From positions 1,860,001-1,924,000 of the forward strand of contig OU015569.1 of the NCBI GenBank assembly GCA_907165135.1: a DNA stretch of 64,000 nt. Reading direction: 5' to 3'. Below the pieces are notes generated by a model. It saw nothing but the letters and a program-made list of their open reading frames with translations, made no database searches and had not been told where the DNA came from. The stretch's first letter is position 1. The number at the start of each line of letters is the position of its first letter. The stretch comes from Oikopleura dioica. Taxonomy: Eukaryota > Animalia > Chordata. The translations under genes were made by a program, and so were the position numbers. This document shows, one piece after another, positions 3,760 through 36,514 of this stretch.

Positions 3760-4562
3760 CTAGTCGACCGGAGTGGTAGGGATGACGCTGAAGTCCTTCT
3801 CCGCAGCATTGAACTGGGTCTTCCTTGTTGTCTGCATTTTTGAATGCGCCCGAGATCTTGCTATTTCGGTTTTCGTTTGACTTCGATGACTTTGGAGAAG
3901 AGTTGATAAGCTAAAAACGAGATCATTTTCCTTGCTACATCTTCGCGTTACCTGTTGGATTCCGCAAGTTTCTTGTCTATCGAAGCCATTAAGTTTGTGA
4001 AACCGCGCTTTCCATGAATTCCGAGCAGCGAAAATTTCATTTGCAAAATCAAGATCTAGTCGACAAAGGTCACCCGCACAAGTTCCCACTGGATTTTCTT
4101 AAAAAAAATTAATAATTATTCGTCGATTAATTTAGGCTTACCGCATGTTGCACGTCCTTTGGTGTCGGTGACCCACTCGTACTCGGTATCGGGCGTGCAG
4201 CCGTCGAAATCTCGCTTCAAACATTGATAGCTTTTGAAAAGCTGCATGCAGATTGTGTCGATCTCGTCGACGGGTTCTCCTGTTCCGACCCAGAAGTCAG
4301 ATTTCATTGATTCCATTGTTGGCGTGCAGTAGCAACCGTAATTACGATAACGCTCCTCGCCTCGGACACTCGATCCACGAGCATCGAGATCATCATCATC
4401 ATCGTGATCCTCATCGTCGTGTTCGTGTTCGTGGTCTTCTTCATCTTCGTGCTCGTGGTCTTCCTCATCGTGGTTGCTTCCAGCAGCGGACTTGAGAACG
4501 ACGGGTGTTTCGATAGCGATGAGGTCGATATCGCGGAGGGAAAGCAATCTAAAGACATGCAA
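3760..4562 (-). CDS. Secretory phospholipase A2-like domain protein with a His/Asp/Glu-rich N-terminal tract, probably non-catalytic
   Basis: YRNYGCYC...GTGEPVDEIDTICMQLFKSYQC...C...C is the sPLA2 Ca-loop/cysteine pattern. A GT-AG intron near 4091-4140 joins it to VGTCAGDLCRLDLDFA. The start codon is unresolved. Confidence 0.65.
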
Positions 4563-4679: not shown

Positions 4680-4988
4680 ATGGACAGCAGTGGAGACTCT
4701 CCAGTAGAGATCGAGGAGAATCATCATTTGAATGATACTCGTCAAGTTGATGAAAAAGGACCCTTTGATTCTTTTTTACAGACTTTGGCTACGGAAGTTA
4801 CTGTTCAATTCTGGGTTCTCGTGCTCTTTGGGCTAGTCATTTTCGTCGTTGTACTCGGTGAGTTCGATATTTATGGAATTAAAATAACTTTTCATCATTT
4901 AGTTCGATGTGGGGGCTGCTGCTGTTGCCCTCGATCGAGGCGACTTTCTCGTCCTCGGCAGCCTTACAGAATGAATTTCAACTACTAA
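4680..4988 (+). CDS. Small single-pass membrane protein with juxtamembrane Cys cluster
   Basis: MDSSGD...FWVLVLFGLVIFVVVL, then a GTGAG...TTTAG intron (~4859-4901), then VRCGGCCCCPRSRRLSR and a stop at 4988. Confidence 0.45.
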   Translation: MDSSGDSPVEIEENHHLNDTRQVDEKGPFDSFLQTLATEVTVQFWVLVLFGLVIFVVVLGEFDIYGIKITFHHLVRCGGCCCCPRSRRLSRPRQPYRMNFNY

Positions 4989-13663: not shown

Positions 13664-16600
13664 ATGCAGAATGACGACACAAAGGGAATCACGAACTGGA
13701 ACACCGTACTAGCCGTGAGTAGTCTGCCAGCTTTCTTGCAGCAGAAGAAGCGTATAATCGCCCGTAGAATGCATCTGCTAAACCTGGTAGCGCGCGCGGA
13801 GGAGCAGAGCCAGGATAAATTGGCGCGCGCACCGTGGGTGCCATGATCAACCAGATAAACCGTCTGTTAATCGCTCTACCCGGTCCGCTATCATTGATAT
13901 TCTTAATTCGCGATTCGAATTTGCTCCTCCTGCCGTTGCCAAGCCCAATATCATGAGCGACACGGGACCGTTGAATCCCGGAAATATACAATTTTTCTTG
14001 AAAACTCATTTGAAACTTCAGAACGCTCAATCTGGCGGTCCAAATGTCGCACAGAAGAAAAAGCCAAAAGCTCAAACGGGGATATTTGCTAACAAGGCTC
14101 CTCGGGCCTTATTTTGCCTTACTCTCCAGAACAAATACCGCCGTTTCTGCATTAAGCTTGTTGAATTAAAGGTATTGCCAAAGTGCGTTAATTATGTATA
14201 CAGGCTCCTAATCGCCTCTCACTGGCTGATCGCGTCTTTAAGGCCTTTGATTATTTTATTCTTCTCACTATCATTGCCAACTGTATCACGCTGGGCGTCC
14301 AAACACCTTATCCGCAGAGCGACTCTGATCCCACGAATGAAAAAGTGGTAAGTTTCAACTCCATCTACCCGATTTCCGTTCTTAGCAATCTCGAAGTACT
14401 TAAGTCTGTCTACATTATTTTCGATACTACAGAAACGAGTAAAATTTCTTTTAAAAAATCAAAACTACGCGCCGGACCAACTACTCGCTAGTGATGACAA
14501 CACGCAGCGGTGATAAATGAGCACTTGGTGGCGCAGGCGGTGCTTTAAATAATGAATGAAATGCAGCATATATCCGACAGTGAATTAGGATTATATATCG
14601 ATTCATTCGATTTCTGCTTTCTTCCCGGGTGTATTCAATTTAATGTAAACAGACAAATCCCGCGGCGGACGAATCACCGTTACTAATCGCTTCGCTTCAG
14701 GAAAACATAGAATATGTATTTATGGTTATCTTCACGTTCGAGTGCGTGCTCAAAATCATCGCTTATGGATTTACGATGCATCCGAACTCCTACCTCCGCA
14801 ACGGATGGAACATCCTCGATTTCACCATTGTGATCATCGGCCTGGTGTCTACTGTCATGGAAAGAATCGTCTCCAAAACCACTGATTTCAAAGCTTTACG
14901 TGCCTTTCGAGTGCTTCGACCACTTCGCCTAGTTTCTGGAGTGCCAAGTAAGCTCCAACTCAAGCTCCCTCCTTTAATCACAGTGCTTTAGGTTTACAAG
15001 TTGTCTTGAACTCAATCTTCCGTGCTATGATTCCACTTCTCCACATTACTCTCCTGGTAAGTCGCGCGAAATGACGAGAAAGAAATATTGTTTAAAAAAT
15101 TATTTAGGTGTTTTTGTTATCGTGATTTATGCAATCATCGGCCTCGAGCTTTTCAAGGGAAAGCTCCACGCCACGTGTTACAAATTAGGAACCCAAACCT
15201 GGGTGAACGTCAGCGACCTTTATGGACCAGAAGCGCCTTTAGTATTGAAAGACCCTGGCGATTTTTCCGTCGACGAAGACGGCTCGCCCTTTCCTTGCGA
15301 TCCTCAGATAACGCAGGGAAGAGACTCTCGCTGGAAGTATCAGCCAAAGTACAGCACCAATTACAGTGACGACGACAATCACGGCCGAGTTTGTCTTGAA
15401 AACGAGCTCTGCCTCGGCCCTGCAGGAGAGGCTCATAAATTTTGCATAAAAGCTGTCATTAATATTTTTTGAAATATTCGACGAAAAACTACTTTGTATT
15501 ATTCAATTAATTGTTGAGATTTGAGTGCGATATTGCGTGCCCAAATCGCGCGTATGTGTGCCCACAGGGCATGTTAACTATTTACGAGGTTTATGATGCG
15601 ATTCAACTTGCATGGTTTGACTACACCAATGTCATGTCAGGAGCAATATAGATCCGAGCTCTTTTGAGTATGATTGAGACTGGTATTGAGCATACTGTCG
15701 CGCGGCCAAGTAATTGTTCCATACACTTCAGATAAACTGCAAGACAAGCTACAGTAGCGTTTTGCTATCGGATTTGCGCCCATACTAAATGTCAGCGCGA
15801 ATAGCACTCGTACTGAGCCAGGTTAAGCCTGTCTCACACTTGATCCAGAGACGAACATGTTCGACCCTAATAAGCCGCAAGTCGACAATTGCTACCACGA
15901 CCCGGAATGGCCCGGTTGGCGCGGTTGGGAAGGACCGCACGGCGGTATCATCAACTTCGACAACATCTTCTTCGCCATGATCACCGTCTTCCAATGCATC
16001 ACGATGGAAGGCTGGACGGACGTCCTCTACTATGTGAGTATTCTTACTGTCTAATTACAGAGTCTGACATTGCTCGCCGCAAGAGCTGATGCCCGTCACT
16101 GTCACTGCTTTCTCTGACGCGCTAGCTTCGACTGTAGCTCCCCTCCCAAATTGTTTGTTTTCGACGAAAGTTTAAAAGACACTCCCGATTTCCAAATTGT
16201 GAGTTTGGGCGTCTGTTAATAATAAAGAGGGTATTAAAATTAAATTCATCATCAACCAACCGCCCCTTACTCCGTCAGACACGCCTGGGCCGTGACAGTT
16301 GCGCCCTTGGGAGAAATTATTGCCACATTTCGATAGACAGATCGCCCAGAATGAGTGCCTGCTTTTTCTAAACAAAGATTTGATACTCTTATCTTAACGT
16401 TTCTAAATGAATTTAGGTAAATAATGCTTATGGACGATTATGGGCTCAGGGTTTCATTCCCGTGCCTACGATCTATTTCGTCAGTTTGATTATCATCGGC
16501 TCGTATTTTGTGATGAACCTAATTCTTGGTGTTCTTTCCGGAGAGTTTTCAAAGGAAAGAGAGAAGGCGCGCGCCCGAGGCGACTTCCAAAAGCTGCGCG

Positions 16601-19600
16601 AGAAGACGCAGATGGAAGCCGATTTCAAGGGCTACTTGGATTGGATCACCCGCGCTGAAGATATCGAGCCAGAGGACGACGATCTCGACGACAACTTGTC
16701 CCTGCTGAGGGAGAACTCGCGCCTCGGCAAGATGGCGATCATCGACAATCACATCGACATGCCGGATTACGCTGGCAGTGACTCCAGCTCAATCAAGCGA
16801 GCCAATTTGGGCTGGTGGGGCAAGACCAAACGCAAAATGTTTCCAGCTTGCTACAGCAAGAAAAAGTAAGTCTCGGAGTTTATGCTCGCTTGCGTAACTT
16901 GACGAACTTTTGTTGAAGGAAGAGATTAGGGAGTTGACACCCATAATAGCTTAACCGTAGAAAGGGCATCTGCGCCCCTTAATCGCTCAGAATGAGCTTG
17001 GCAATCAGCAGTAATTTACAGCTCGTGTTGTTAGCGCCTGGCCATCAAGAAGTAGTCATGGGATTGTCACTTTAGCTCTTCTTGATTGATCGTGTCCTCT
17101 TTTCCAAAAACGTAAAACTTCCATTATCCTTATTTTCTACTGCTTTATACTTTGTCAAACTTTTACGCGGGCATCATTCTAAAGTTGTCCTTAGAAGCCG
17201 TAATTGGCATCTAATTTAAGAAAGAGCTTCTTTATGAAAATAAACTTACTTAAAAAATTAATCTTTAACGGAACTAAATTAAAATTGAAGCGAGTCTTTT
17301 CGCCGCTGGAATGGACGAAACAGAAAACGCCTGCGTTTCTTGGTCAAGTCAAAATCTTTTTACTGGTTCATCATTTTCCTCGTCTTTTTAAATACTGTCG
17401 TGCAGGCCTCTGAACACTACAATCAGCCCGACTGGCTCACCAATGTTCAACGTAAGTTTAGCAGTAGCTTTTCCTTTTCTGAGATTTTCAGTTGTCGCGA
17501 ATAAAGTGCTGCTTGGGCTGTTTACGGCCGAAATGTTTCTAAAAATGTATGCTCTGGGACTTGTGACTTATTTTTCGTCATTGTTCAATCGGTTCGACTG
17601 TTTCGTCGTTTGCGGCTCCATCATCGAACTCATCCTTACCTCGGCTAATGTCCTCGAACCACTTGGAATTTCTGTTCTGCGTTGCGTACGCCTTCTGTAA
17701 CGGGATCCACCAAACAAGTCAACTTCGAGATTTAAAGAGTAAAATGTCTCCTTCGTGAGCTAGCTGGCCATTAAGAATTAATACCGAAAAAACGTTAAAG
17801 TTAGTGTTTCAATTGCGAAGCAATCCCCATGGGGCCAGTGCGGCCCGCAGAGTATCTTTTTGCATGATAATTATGGGGAAAATATTTGAGCAGAGCTTGG
17901 CCAAGTGCCAGTCTGCTGCGGCGCGATCAAGATCGAATGTGGATCCCCCCGATAGCGAATCTTTAAAGTGACCAAGTACTGGGAGTCACTGTCAAACTTA
18001 GGAAAGCCTTGACAAATGTAAACATTTAGGAATAATTAGCATTTGATCCAAATCAATAGATCGCGCTCCGGTGATTTCTAAACTAGGCTTAATTCAAAAG
18101 GAAAACTTAAATTCTTGAAGCGATTGTCAAGGCGTGAAAAAGTTGCCTCTTTATTGAATTCAATCCGTTCAATCGCCTCACTGCTTTTGCTGCTAGGACT
18201 TTTTATAATTATCTTCAGGTACGTTATAATTAATTATTTGATGAGCATAGCATTACTTATTCATGCACTATTATTATTTTCTGTGATGCAGGCTTCATTA
18301 AATACAAGAATAGGGCAGATGCAGAGGGTGATGTTTTACTGCTTCGCCTTAATGTCCTTTTCTTTTGCAATCGATAAGAATATAGATTCTAAGGATATCT
18401 AATGGATTATTCACATATTTATACGCATATAGTGTAGCCATGCCAGCTAGCGACTCGATTTCCTTCCAACAAAAAGTCGCTCTTTCACGCATCAGAAAGC
18501 ACTTAGCAATAACTATTACAGAATTACCGATTTGTAGTTTGCTTGGGATGCAACTCTTTGGTGGAAAATTCAACACAATCGACCAGGCACAGACGCGCTC
18601 GAATTTCGATGATTTTCTACACGCGCTGCTTACTGTCTTTCAAATCCTCACTGGTGAGGATTGGAATTCTGTCATGTATTCTGGAATCCAAGCTTACGAA
18701 GGTCCAGCAAAGCCATGGTTACGAATTTGAAAAAATGACTGTTGATTATGCAGTGCAAGATTTTTTTCCTTCTTGATTTTAAGGTGCCACTTTTGTAACC
18801 CTACTAAGCCACTTGGAATGGTGGTCTCAGTCTATTTTATCATTCTGTTCGTCTTCGGAAACTACATTCTGTTGAATGTTTTCCTCGCCATTGCCGTCGA
18901 TAATCTGGCTGATGCGGAAAGCCTCACTAAATCTCAGCTAGGGTCAACAGCGATCCGCCGATCGATTCTTATACTCATGCATTTATAGCTTTAGAAATAA
19001 GAAAAATGATTCCTCGCGTTGACCTAAAAACAAGAAAGAAAATGAAGAAGAAAAGAAACGCAAGAAAACTCTCCGCTTCCAGAAAATCTCAAGGGTCTTC
19101 CGAAAACGCCAAGTTGTGGAACAAGTGGAGCAACAAGTCCAACTGCCCGAAGAGGTAGAGGAGATTGACGAAGAAATCGCCGAGAACCAACATGTGCGAA
19201 TAGAAGTCACTTCCGCCTCGGACAGTGAGTCCCTTCATTTGCCTGAGGGAGACGAAGACTCGGAACCTGAAGTGCCTTCTGGGCCCCGCCCGAAACGACT
19301 TTCTGATCTGAACCTCAAGGAGAAAACGGTTCCTATGCCCAATGCGTCGGCTTTCTTCTGCTTGAGCACGACTAACCCCTTCAGGAAGATATGCCACAAG
19401 ATTGTCAACTTGAACGTCTTCAACAACATCATCCTCGCATGTATTGTCTTCTCCTCAATTACTCTTGCAATCGAAGATCCGATCGACGAGTCATCGAGGA
19501 AAAATCAAATTCTGAAGATTTTCGATTACTTCTTCACTTCAATCTTCACCATGGAAATTGTGCTCAAAGTGATCTCCTACGGTGCCATCTTCCACAAAGG

Positions 19601-22600
19601 CTCCTACATGCGATCTTGGTTCAATCTTCTGGATTTGCTCGTTGTTTGTGTCTCTTTGCTGTCGATTTTCAGCGATTCATCGACATCTGACATTTCCGTG
19701 CTCAAGATTTTGCGAGTTCTTCGAGTTCTGCGACCGCTGCGAGCCATTAATCGAGCAAAAGGACTGAAGCACGTCGTCCAGTGCGTCTTTGTTGCAATCG
19801 GTACCATTCAGAATATCATTCTCATCACTATGTTGCTCATCTTCATGTTCGCTTGTATTGGCGTCCAGTTGTTCAAAGGAAGACTTTATGCCTGCAGTGA
19901 TAATTCCAAGACGACCATGGAAGAGTGTAAAGGTAAAAAACTTAAAATTACGCTCTCATTGAATAACGAAATTTCAGGCGAATATGTGGAATTTGAAGAC
20001 AACACATTCAATAAGCCTGTTTTGCGCCAGCGCGAATGGCAGAACAGCGATTTCAACTACGACACTGTGCACGGCGCGATGCTGTCACTCTTCGTCGTGG
20101 CCACTTTTGAAGGCTGGCCAAGTCTGCTGTACAAGTAAGCGATCGTCGAAAAATTTTTATAAGGAAGCAATTATTCTGGTCCTTGTCGCGGCTGGGCGTA
20201 AATCTATTGTAATCCTAGCTAAGCTGCGTGATTCATTTACTCAAAATCAATTTCGCGCAATTTCGTCTCTCCCGTGTCTTATGGAATCGTTTTAGGTCAA
20301 TTGACTCCTGGTCGGAGGACCACGGACCGAAGTACATGGCTCGCTCTGGCGTTTCCCTCTTCTACATTGCATACATTATTGTCATTGCGTTCTTCATGAT
20401 GAACATCTTCGTCGGTTTCGTCATTGTCACCTTCCAAGAGCAAGGAGAAATGGAATATAAGAACTGCGAACTCGACAAGAATCAACGCCAGTGCTTAGGA
20501 AAGGCTTACTAAACCAACTATTTTGAAAGCTTGGGAAAAAATAAGCAGTAGTTCAAAACTTTTGCTTACTATTTGAATGAATTAAAAAGCCGTTACAAAG
20601 AATACGCGCTAAAAGCGAAACCCATTCCACGATATATGCCGTCAAATCCCTGGCAATACCGCGTTTGGCTCGTTGTCAACTCACCTTACTTCGAGTACTT
20701 TATGCTCGGCCTTATTTTATTGAATACCCTCTGTGACGGATTTCTTAATTTAATCAGATCTACGAGATTATGAAAACAGTAGAAGCTTTAAAAGCTTTCG
20801 AAATCCGTAATCAGTTTAACAGTTCAGCACGACCAACAAATCCCCAATCTAACGACCCTACTTGGCTACCTAAATGTTGTCTTCACTACGCTCTTTACCA
20901 TCGAAATGGTCTTCAAAATGGTGGCCTTCAAACCAAAAGTTAGGCAATCTAATTGATCACTGATCTAATTGAATTTCAGCATTATTTCCAAGATCCCTGG
21001 AACACTTTTGATTTCATCGTTGTTGTTGGCTCCATTGCCGACTTGTTCGCCGATTCCAAGGACAACAACCTTTCGATCAAGGTTTCTTTCTTCCGTCTAT
21101 TTCGCGTTCTTCGACTTGTCAAGGCACGGATCGCGAAATTATTAAAATGGAGCTTAATTTCATCTAATACGTCAAAATGAGATGAGTGCTATATATCCAG
21201 TTAAATCGGCAGATATTTATGCGAAGGGCTAAACAATTTGAGTAAATGACCAAAAAACGAATTAGATCGATCCTAGGATAGCTGCTTTCGCGGGGCGAAG
21301 GCATTCGGACACTGCTGTGGACCTTTGTCAAGTCAATCCGCGCTTTGCCATACGTTGCCATGTTAATCTTGCTACTCTTCTTCATCTATGGCGTTGTCGG
21401 CATGCAAATGTTTGGCACCATTCAGCCGCTCGAGCATAAAATGATCAACGAAAATAACAATTTCAAATCGGTAATCTAACTTAATTATAACACGAATGAT
21501 ACGAGTGCTTCAGTTCTTCCAGTCAATGTTGCTGCTCTTCCGCTGTATGACTGGAGAAGCATGGCAAGATATTATGCTGGACTCGGTGGCAAATCGCGAA
21601 TGTAATCAGCGCTACCTCCAGTCTTTGCCTGACCTGAAGGGAATCGACTATCCACCGATTCGCCCTGAAGACGGCGACAAAGAAAAACAGCGTCTCTTCG
21701 ATATCTACATGGAGAAGAAGTTCTCTTGCGGTTCCAACTTTGCCTACGTCTACTTTATCAGTTTCTACATGTTTTGTGCCTTCTTGATCATCAACCTTTT
21801 CGTTGCTGTCATCATGGACAATTTCGACTACCTGACGCGGGACTGGTCGATCTTGGGGCCCCATCATCTGGACGAGTTTGCCCGCATCTGGGCTGAATAT
21901 GATCACGACGCCAAGGGCAGAATCAAGCATCTGGACGTCGTTACTCTTCTGCGACGCATTCAGCCTCCTCTTGGTTTTGGACGTCTTTGTCCACACAGAG
22001 TTGCCTGCAAGCGCTTGGTCTCGATGAACATGCCGTTACAGTCTGATGGAACGGTTATGTTCAATGCTACTTTGTTTGCTCTTATCAGAACCTCGCTCAA
22101 AATAAAAACTGAAGGTAGGAAATTAATCCTCTCTTCAGCGTACTAAACTTTCATTTCAAGGAAATATTGATCAGGCAAATGAAGAACTTCGCTCTGTGAT
22201 CAAGAAGATTTGGAAGCGAACGTCCATGAAGCTACTGGATCAAGTCGTTCCTCCAGCTGGGAATGACGATGTGACAGTTGGCAAGTTCTACGCCACTTAT
22301 CTCATCCAGGTCATTTCTACTCCCAAATATTTTTTTGAATATCATTTTTAGGAATATTTCCGCAAATTCAAACAGCGGAAGTTAGAGCGTCAGACCGGTG
22401 GCCATCGAACTGCAGCCGCTCTCCAAGCCGGCATTAGGTGAATATCAGAGCGAGAGGCAAATCACTGGATTATCTTTTTTTAAGATCGCTGCAAGAACTC
22501 GGTCCAGAGATTAAGCGGGTTATCTCCTCCGACAACATCCACGCTGCTGCTGCCGCTGCCTCAGGAGAAGATGGCGACTTTGTCGACGAAACTTGTTACG

Positions 22601-35111: not shown

Positions 35112-36125
35112 ATGACCGACGAAAATGACCTGAAGAGTGACACGGCGGTCGGAGAATCCATCGACAAGCTCAACCGTTACTTCGACAACCTGTTCGAAGA
35201 CGTGACAAATTTTGACGGGTCACGTGCAGCCGTTTTCCGTCCTTATTCGGGCTATCTCCTGGCAGATGTTGTCTTGACATTCACGGACTGGACAGATAAT
35301 TGGCGAATTGATTTGCAAAAGCCGTCCATCATGGACTCGATGAAAACTGCGCTAGGAAATGTCAATCATCATGTTCATGAATTTTCATAATGACATCAGA
35401 AGACGCCTGTTGTTTTCAAAAAGGCATTCTGAAATCATAGAAGAGTACTGGTGACATTCCAAAGAAACCTACGAGAACTCAGTGTCCATTGAAAACTTTC
35501 CTCAATACCACGAAATGGAAACAGCCCTAATTGCCCTCTTTCCGACGCTTACTTTTTGCGGTCTCATCTTTCCCGCGTTCATCAGTTTTAAACACGAGTC
35601 GGGCCCTAAGTATGCACCCACAAACTCTTTTTCCATCTTCTTCTTTCAGCGTGACTCGAGCGTAACCGATTTTAAGACGGTGTCGGCGTTGGCTTTTTAT
35701 GATTTTTACAGTTGTGGAGACTTATTTGGACGTTCGCGTTTGGCAGAAATTCGCAACAACTGGCATGACTCTGACTGGATACGATCCAACTATTTCTAAC
35801 TTGATGATATTTTTCACCTTCATGACTTTCTTAGTCCAACTTGTGAAGTTTAATCTGGCCGTCATCCCCCACATTAAAGGCCAGATTCGCAATCACATCA
35901 GAAATCGATATCTGCAGCAACTTGACTCTAATCTTTCTAAAAGCATACAGACGAGTTAAATTCGGCGACGACAAGTACAGTGTGGACACTACAAGAACTG
36001 TTTTTAAAATTGACAGCTTCACGGCAACGTTGTATATTTTCGGCCGAGTCCCGCTCTCGTTCATTGTCCATTTTTACCTTGTGAAAATGAAAGTTCCTCG
36101 TGCCATAGGAGCGGATATCAATTAA
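35112..36125 (+). CDS. Unidentified gene (overlapping ORF pieces)
   Basis: Four consecutive ORFs and a downstream AATAAA; exon chain not resolved. Confidence 0.3.
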
Positions 36126-36514
36126 TTGTTACAAAAATAATTTCAGGGCATTAATTATAATTTGCTAGAACAAATAAATTAAATCCGTGGATCAGGTTGA
36201 GTTTTGAATAAAAAGAAAATTAAAAGATAGCCACGAAAATTGCTTTGAGATAAACTCAAAAAAGTACCACGAGAACTAACTTGGAAGCTGATCTTTCACG
36301 TGCCAATCTACCTTTATCTCTTTTGGGTCGCTTATCAGAAGGTATTTTTAACGTCTGTCGTTATATCAATTTTTAATTTTAAAAAGGTTCGAAGAAGCAT
36401 CAAAGCGACACGAGATTGCAGACTGAAACCTTCCGCACAAGTCGGCAATCCCAACTGGCAATGGGTCTGTGAACCATCACGCACCACTTGCTGACCATAT
36501 TTTAGCTCCTTGGA

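Follow-up and report, generated by a model that had tools for sequence, protein, structure and literature searches.

Apparent one-base-offset introns closed by terminal stems in the L-type calcium-channel gene of Oikopleura dioica

About 11-12% of the introns of the larvacean Oikopleura dioica are not of the GT/AG type (PMC8008620). In the described G*-AG introns of this species, the first two intron bases are followed by an A, and the exon before them closes with AG or G (PMC7072748). As far as the accessible text of PMC11282704 and PMC13326754 goes, Fritillaria borealis has mostly non-canonical introns (AG/AC, AG/AT), which bear inverted repeats as well as target duplications and which the U2 spliceosome removes; the minor spliceosome is missing from larvaceans, as are U12-type small nuclear RNAs (PMC13326754). 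Here we describe the introns of a calcium-channel gene in a stretch of 64,000 nucleotides of O. dioica (GenBank assembly GCA_907165135.1, contig OU015569.1, positions 1,860,001 to 1,924,000 of the forward strand), hereafter the window, whose coordinates on the + strand are used throughout. The Okinawa assembly, OKI2018_I69, is Nanopore-based and Pilon-polished; its 19 scaffolds total 64.3 Mbp, and the median intron length is 49 bp (PMC8008620).

Judged by homology, the host gene is the L-type (CaV1) calcium-channel gene of the Okinawa lineage, a four-domain channel encoded on the + strand from about 14.0 to 23.7 kb of the window. Single exons matched human CaV1.2 structures (E 4e-38), with the alignment stopping precisely at ...LRCVRLL. 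A preliminary description of this DNA had singled out three junctions, which we call (b), (a) and (c), in the transmembrane segments IIS4, IVS1 and IS5. Overall, we consider it probable that (b) and (a) are genuine introns that do not start with GT, are closed by a stem and are excised exactly, and that (c) is an ordinary GT-AG intron next to which the assembly has dropped a T.

Extent of excision expected at IIS4 and IVS1

Junctions across the gene were mapped by homology and by comparison with lineages that lack the intron in question. Exons were queried singly in all searches, and no joined or spliced model was used. The runs containing the stretch were small-genome DNA runs (one species label) and marine metagenomes. 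Two other individuals were represented by Logan DNA contigs: X2, a different sample of the same study, and X4, which comes from a separate study. Related lineages were represented by contigs L003-L017, and independent metagenome contigs were reached through protein searches with a single upstream exon.

Intron (b) occupies 17698-17955 (258 nt, TA...AG) or, read one base to the left, 17697-17954 (GT...TA). Intron (a) occupies 20734-20814 (81 nt, TG...AG) and can also be read as 20733-20813 (GT...CA) or 20735-20815 (GA...GT). The letters at all three junctions were as the preliminary description had given them, and we likewise found that GT...AG removal at each leaves the mRNA 1 nt short, at (c) in the sequence as assembled. 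For (b) and (a) the shortfall is not a missing base. X2 had no gaps across either junction, all 33 gap letters of X4 were located elsewhere, and the same one-short structure occurred in metagenome assemblies (L007, L008 and L010 for (b); L011 and L012 for (a)). The ends of (b) read CTG|CAACGG... in L007, CTG|TTAAGG...ATAATAG|CGA in L008 and CTG|TGAAGG...TTGATAG|CGA in L010, and those of (a) in L011 and L012 were the same as in the window. Two individuals and five metagenome contigs thus support the assembled sequence at both sites.

What the spliced product should be is fixed by related lineages. Intron (b) was present in L007, L008, L010, L013 and L004 and absent in L003 and L017, whose sequence at this position is CTC CTG CGT ATC (LL|RI); because both of these contigs carry other introns, they are genomic. 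Intron (a) was present in L017 and absent in L013-L016, which read ACA CTG TGT CTG GCG GTG CAG (LC|LAVQ). Because these intron-less orthologues fix the product, the excised lengths must be exactly 258 nt and 81 nt. The central claim of the preliminary description, that one boundary G must stay in the mRNA at (a) and (b), is borne out by the same orthologues, which give LRCVRLL|RIFK and LNTLC|L(T/A)VQH.

We listed all pairs of sites with a G at the start and AG at the end, and none restored LRCVRLLRIFK or LNTLCLTVQH. For (b), each alternative deleted at least 4 residues of IIS4, and the sole GT-AG option removed VRLL from the S4 segment, as had been stated; for (a), the alternatives changed IVS1 by -1 to -4 or +7 residues. 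Across the two sites, the in-frame GT-AG alternatives cost 3-4 conserved residues. The VRLL codons read GTA CGC CTT CTG, GTC CGC CTA CTG, GTT CGC CTA CTG and GTT CGT TTA TTG across lineages; because these differences are only synonymous, the codons are translated. On this evidence (b) is the strongest case, and (a) is good but not proven.

Full-length splicing would read CGCCTTCTG|CGAATC for (b) and CTCTG|TTTAAC for (a); gapped-pattern scans of metagenome contigs for spliced forms of the two found nothing. Among the protein matches from a representative and a word-index search, there was no model from the species itself, only relatives at up to 73% identity. One contig from JGI (P0388, 1478 nt) represents part of a spliced CaV1 transcript from an L003-like lineage. 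It joins ...PACYA-N-KRLRRW..., in agreement with the predicted canonical intron J7. Its lineage is without intron (b), and the fragment hence has no bearing on that junction.

The interior of (b) is itself conserved. Positions 17760-17935 shared 85-87% identity between the window and L008/L010, compared with 62-66% at third codon positions of the flanking exon, and a stretch of more than 50 nt was identical in four lineages. A search of Rfam with intron (b) returned nothing credible, and no second copy of this stretch was present in the genome. The interior may be a nested functional element.

Junction (c) has a different explanation. Here the assembly is wrong: the run of five T at 15111-15115 should be six, an extra T being present behind position 15110 in both X2 (depth 39) and X4 (depth 72). 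Removing the GT-AG intron 15057-15107 from the uncorrected assembly runs into a stop codon. After correction, the same 51-nt intron (GTAAGT...TTTAG) is in frame and yields LLVFFVIVIY, with a length equal to that of every CaV1, and (c) agrees with a canonical U2-type GT-AG intron. At the same position and in the same phase, L017 has a plain GT-AG intron, CTG|GTAAGA...ATTAG|GTT ATG TTT. Junction (c) looked one base short only since the Nanopore-based assembly lost one T from a run of six; because six T in two other individuals restore the frame with GT-AG, it is an assembly artefact. The proposed offset intron at 15057-15106 therefore falls, on the very condition that the preliminary description had named for its refutation.

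The argument that random indels were unlikely, exons in the window being mostly free of frameshifts, was only partly right, as some 400 bases here carry two or three homopolymer errors (15110, 15447, 15464). Behind 15447 an extra A was present in X2 and X4, and behind 15464 an extra T in X2 alone. These two positions lie near the end of the exon that follows IS5, the donor of which could not be placed. Homopolymer errors in this assembly can thus mimic one-base-offset introns, as they did at (c).

Closing stems and the non-GT class

The introns of the gene fell into 13 plain GT-AG introns and seven non-GT introns, the latter being (b), (a), J10, J12, J13, J15 and J18. When all seven are read in the register that ends in AG, each is closed by a stem that begins 2-4 nt in from the 5' cut and stops 6-9 nt short of the 3' cut. 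The preliminary description had not noted these stems. In (b), a 9-bp perfect inverted repeat (17702-17710 with 17939-17947) closes the whole intron in the minimum-free-energy fold, and none of 2,000 shuffled sequences matched it. In (a), the 9-bp perfect inverted repeat joins 20736-20744 with 20800-20808, and again 0 of 2,000 shuffles matched.

Three introns of the class start with G and end in AG. J10 (GA-AG, 18002-18142) has a 10-bp stem between 18006-18015 and 18124-18133 and is absent in L003 and L004. J15 (GA-AG, 20499-20600) has a 5-bp stem between 20503-20507 and 20587-20591 (p 0.05). J18 (GC-AG, 21124-21281) has a 6-bp stem between 21128-21133 and 21268-21273 (p 0.01) and is absent in L013 and L017, which read an unbroken RLVKLLSRGEG.

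Two further one-base-offset introns, J12 and J13, were not listed in the preliminary description. J12, in the IIS5-S6 loop, spans 18713-18808 (96 nt, CC...AG or GC...AA), with a stem between 18717-18725 and 18792-18800. At its final coordinates this stem was assessed by measurement only; it has 9 bp, one of them a G-U pair, and leaves spacers of 4 and 8 nt. L013 and L004 are intron-less at J12, reading AYDGPQKPLGMVV, and L017 has a stem-closed GC-AG intron at the position. Six X24 RNA reads skip 96 nt here. Their joint was placed computationally at 18707/18804, where no GT-AG pair fits; shifting it to 18712/18809 costs one A/T mismatch, gives the spacers of 4 and 8, and agrees with the position of the L017 intron and with the intron-less sequence of L013 and L004. 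Readings of the joint as a CA...TA intron at 18707/18804 or as a canonical intron at 18718-18783 were set aside, as the L017 orthologue and the stem geometry favor 18713-18808. The flanks of J12 (18702-18715 and 18800-18812) carry a near-repeat, C[A/T]AAGCCA. Because of it the read joint can be placed in more than one way, and it may be a remnant of the event that gave rise to the intron.

J13, in the II-III loop, spans 18938-19034 (97 nt, CT...AG or GC...AA), with a stem between 18941-18948 and 19018-19025 (shuffle p 0.003). It is absent in L013, L004 and L017 (SQ|KE). A GG-AG alternative exists for J13 and would add one Leu.

The spacers on the 5' and 3' sides were 4/8 in (b), J12 and J18, 4/9 in J10 and J15, 3/9 in J13 and 2/6 in (a). 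The six non-GT introns scored by shuffles had 5-10 Watson-Crick pairs (p 0 to 0.05). GT introns had at most 4 Watson-Crick pairs, with p above 0.18 in 12 of 12 scored, the thirteenth being identified by eye only. The closing stems are specific to the non-GT introns of this gene.

The seven also share their splice-site surroundings. All have N-N-A-N-G at the 5' end and a preceding exon that ends in G, and their 3' ends are TAG, CAG or AAG. Their first two bases in the AG-ending register are GA, GA, GC, TA, TG, CT and CC.

Three attempts to extend the pattern were dropped. A rule by which the 3' spacer exceeds the 5' spacer by 4, as a 4-bp target duplication would give, fits (b), (a), J18, (b) in L013 and L004, and an odd intron of L013 (i1), and fails for J10, J13 and J15. 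An end motif shared by (a), (b) and J18 (ACGGAT/ATCCGT) was not upheld across the window as a repeat family. A window-wide scan for a stem, an AG end and an open frame returned 1,822 hits and was too unspecific. Another gene of the window may contain a GA...AG intron (36114-36191), whose GGAT/ATCC closing stem would lie some 4 and 9 nt in from its ends.

Stem replacement, intron age and origin

Four orthologous introns keep the stem with different letters: (b) in L013 and L004, (a) in L017, J12 in L017 and J15 in L013. For example, the stem of (b) is GGGATCCAC/GTGGATCCC in the group to which the window belongs, a 13-bp TGGCTTTAAATAA helix in L013 and a helix of 11-12 bp in L004. The replacement stems in L017 and in J15 of L013 are short (p 0.04-0.09). 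Intron (a) of L011 and L012 keeps the ends and the stem around an interior that bears no relation to that in the window and is 9 nt longer.

Each of (b), (a), J10, J12, J13 and J18 was absent from at least one sister lineage. By these distributions the non-GT introns are the young ones, and (b) and (a) probably arose within these lineages. The stems are probably left over from the inverted ends of inserted elements. This origin is suggested only by analogy with Fritillaria, because (a) and (b) are each single-copy in the genome (genome-wide searches covered 64,281,565 bases in 19 contigs, the full 64-Mb genome). Flanking 4-mers matched at 3 of 4 bases for (a), for (b) in L013 and for i1, a match that is also compatible with the splice consensus.

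Related lineages hold further introns that the window lacks. Within what is a single 371-codon exon in the window, L013 has three (L013:3808-3940, 4310-4420 and approximately 4680-4853). The first of them is one-base-offset (AT...AG or GA...TA), and the upstream RLSD codons differ only synonymously; the second has a GA-AG reading and a 7-bp closing stem. In L017, a 42-nt in-frame GT-AG insertion (L017:13609-13650) between GEG and IRT, in IVS4-S5, is missing from the window and looks like a young canonical intron.

Register, rival explanations and known systems

The following model would account for these observations. Precise removal of 258 nt and 81 nt would restore the IIS4 and IVS1 helices. 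A helix specific to each intron would tie a site some 4 nt downstream of the 5' cut to one some 8 nt upstream of the 3' cut. After the G that ends the exon, the 5' end would retain only the A at +3 and the G at +5 of GTAAG, the 3' end would be a normal YAG, and the first two intron bases would be free within the class. Where the first base is T or C, the last G of the exon would combine with it into a spurious GT or GC, shifted left by one base, giving the appearance of a missing G. From the spliceosomal character of these signals, we infer that a U2-type spliceosome removes the introns. More tentatively, and at somewhat less than an even chance, the 5' cut of the whole class in Oikopleura may be set by the closing helix together with A+3 and G+5 instead of GU, with U, C or A as the first base.

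Several points weigh against this model. The spacers are not constant (2/6, 3/9, 4/8, 4/9 and 5/9), the odd intron i1 of L013 has a weak stem only, and a role of the stem in defining the splice sites is something we infer from the sequence. RNA reads were placed from one bulk and one single-cell run at a likeness threshold of 92, and a lower value might catch reads of diverged strains; none of the 8 reads per run placed in this way lay over (a) or (b). Because these reads were only 90-99% like the window, they probably derive from another lineage, so the joint at J12, which is support and not proof, may reflect an intron-less allele and not splicing. At (a), splicing between a G start and an AG end that leaves the protein 1-4 residues shorter would also be compatible with the sequence. 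The register cannot be read from the mRNA either, because the message is identical whether the shared G is counted to the first exon or to the second. Finally, the base to the left of the cut is G at every such intron in every lineage, and when this G is counted as the first intron base, variation is confined to +2 (T, C, G, A), a position known to be free in the G*-AG introns of O. dioica.

The last point belongs to the register of the preliminary description, in which the donor starts with G (17697-17954, GT...TA; 20733-20813, GT...CA) and the 3' cut falls between the A and the G of YAG. We regard this as the less likely register, though the nearest competitor. It has a G at +1 in all 13 intron-lineage pairs. 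Starts are GT, GC, GT, GT, GT and GG for (b), GT and GC for (a), GC and GG for J12, GC for J13 and GA for i1 of L013. In the Leu codon, G is constant at the third position and the first position varies (CTG or TTG). Conservation of the exon-end G is, however, already known for GA-AG introns. The register would also leave an A at -1 beside an unused AG, and we know of no spliceosome that forms such a 3' end. In it the conserved A and G would fall at +4 and +6, where they match GTAAG less well, and the spacers would become 5 and 7, whereas the GA-AG and GC-AG introns of the gene have 4 and 8-9. At (b), L004 (GC-AG) and L013 (TC...AG) have their stem and geometry in common and differ only at this base. 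Starting one base later gives the offset introns a normal YAG 3' end, A at +3 and G at +5 as in GTAAG, and a closing stem that runs from near +5 to near -9, with spacers like those of the gene's GA-AG and GC-AG introns. With some reserve we therefore favor TA-AG and TG-AG, with a first base other than G, over GT-TA and GT-CA. Of the offset splicing first proposed, the kept G at (a) and (b) stands, and special 3' cleavage or insertion of a G after splicing is not needed, because a start one base later with an AG end gives the same mRNA.

Other explanations concern the excision itself. Use of nearby sites with a G start and an AG end, at the expense of the protein (17686...17955, losing VRLL; 20733...20822, turning CLTV into F), draws on in-frame pairs that do exist, and at (a) a change at the outer end of S1 could be tolerated. 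We consider it quite improbable: at (b) every option would cost IIS4 a gating charge and no fewer than 4 residues, purifying selection acts on the VRLL codons in five lineages, and the intron-less lineages retain full-length helices. At (a), the ends and the stem are conserved in L011, L012 and L017 when the intron is read as ending in AG, and the alternatives cut inside the stem or far from it. The explanation by assembly error, in which each of the three exon edges has lost a base, holds for (c), in a Nanopore-based assembly with two or three homopolymer errors in this region, but it is very improbable as a general account, since X2, X4 and five metagenome contigs match the window at (a) and (b), where a missing base would not fall in a homopolymer. 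Removal without a spliceosome, by a structure-guided endonuclease and a ligase that use the stem as a ruler (as with tRNA, HAC1/XBP1 or euglenid nonconventional introns), would suit the free terminal dinucleotides, the near-fixed distance of the stem and borders that are ambiguous by 1-2 nt, traits like those of the euglenid introns. It too is improbable, given that the YAG 3' end, A+3, G+5 and the exon-end G are spliceosomal signals, that the class grades into GA-AG and GC-AG introns, that the spacers vary by 1-2 nt, and that the non-canonical introns of the sister genus Fritillaria are all removed by the U2 spliceosome.

In either register, the introns break a near-universal rule of the major spliceosome, that of a G at the first or of a G at the last intron base. 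They do so in an essential, highly conserved chordate gene in which intron-less sister lineages fix the excision to the base. Four one-base-offset introns stand beside three G-start introns of the same build in this one gene, and closing stems together with offset introns offer a concrete, testable model of how O. dioica tolerates many recent rule-breaking introns. Gene predictors restricted to GT, GC and GA donors and AG acceptors will mis-model such genes. If true, a 5' cut set by a helix would amount to a structure-assisted splice-site code in a chordate that has the major spliceosome only. Such a code would break the rule of pairing between G(+1) and G(-1), and the other register would break the rule that introns end in G.

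A literature search, beyond the reach of which lay Denoeud 2010 and Henriet 2019, found no description of closing stems or of introns with a free first base in Oikopleura. The U12 type does not apply: the 5' ends of (b) and (a) (TAACGG/GTAACG and TGACGG/GTGACG) fail the consensus ([AG]TATCCTT at the 5' end, TCCTTAAC at the branch site). Nor do (a) and (b) pass as canonical U2-type GT-AG introns, which would leave the mRNA 1 nt short. The G*-AG introns of O. dioica resemble them in the AG 3' end, the exon-end (A)G and the A at +3, as far as the accessible accounts of that class go (Denoeud 2010 as cited in PMC8008620; PMC7072748). The exon-end G and the A at +3 were found in all of (b), (a), J12, J13, J10, J15 and J18, and the two GA-AG introns and the GC-AG intron of this gene have the same closing stem and geometry as the offset introns. 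However, no register of (a), (b), J12 or J13 gives a G at +1 together with an AG end; because no such pair restores the orthologue product, (a) and (b) are not members of the G*-AG class.

Outside O. dioica, the introns of Fritillaria derived from miniature inverted-repeat transposable elements are similar, in the accessible text on them, in belonging to a larvacean and in having lineage-specific positions, inverted repeats at the ends, a first base other than G in some cases and borders ambiguous by a few bases. According to the same text their last two bases are AC or AT, and a YAY triplet occurs both at the 3' end and ahead of the 5' cut, whereas the introns described here have YAG at the 3' end; moreover, (a) and (b) are single-copy, and their target-site duplications reach at best 3 of 4 bases. 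Euglenid nonconventional introns likewise have variable borders, a stem that joins the ends and short repeats that blur the cut. Their stem pairs +4 to +6 with -8 to -6 (CAG/CTG), in an unrelated organism and probably with unrelated machinery, whereas here spliceosomal signals remain. Shifted-register and weak 5' splice sites can be rescued by the flanking consensus or by secondary structure in the intron, for example by end pairing of the RPS17B type in yeast; the idea is alike in that pairing within an intron shortens the effective distance between the ends and offsets weak sites. Such introns keep GU at +1/+2, whereas here either GU is not kept or the 3' AG rule is broken. Within the non-canonical introns of larvaceans, the offset introns are distinct from both the G*-AG group of O. 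dioica and the AC/AT group of Fritillaria.

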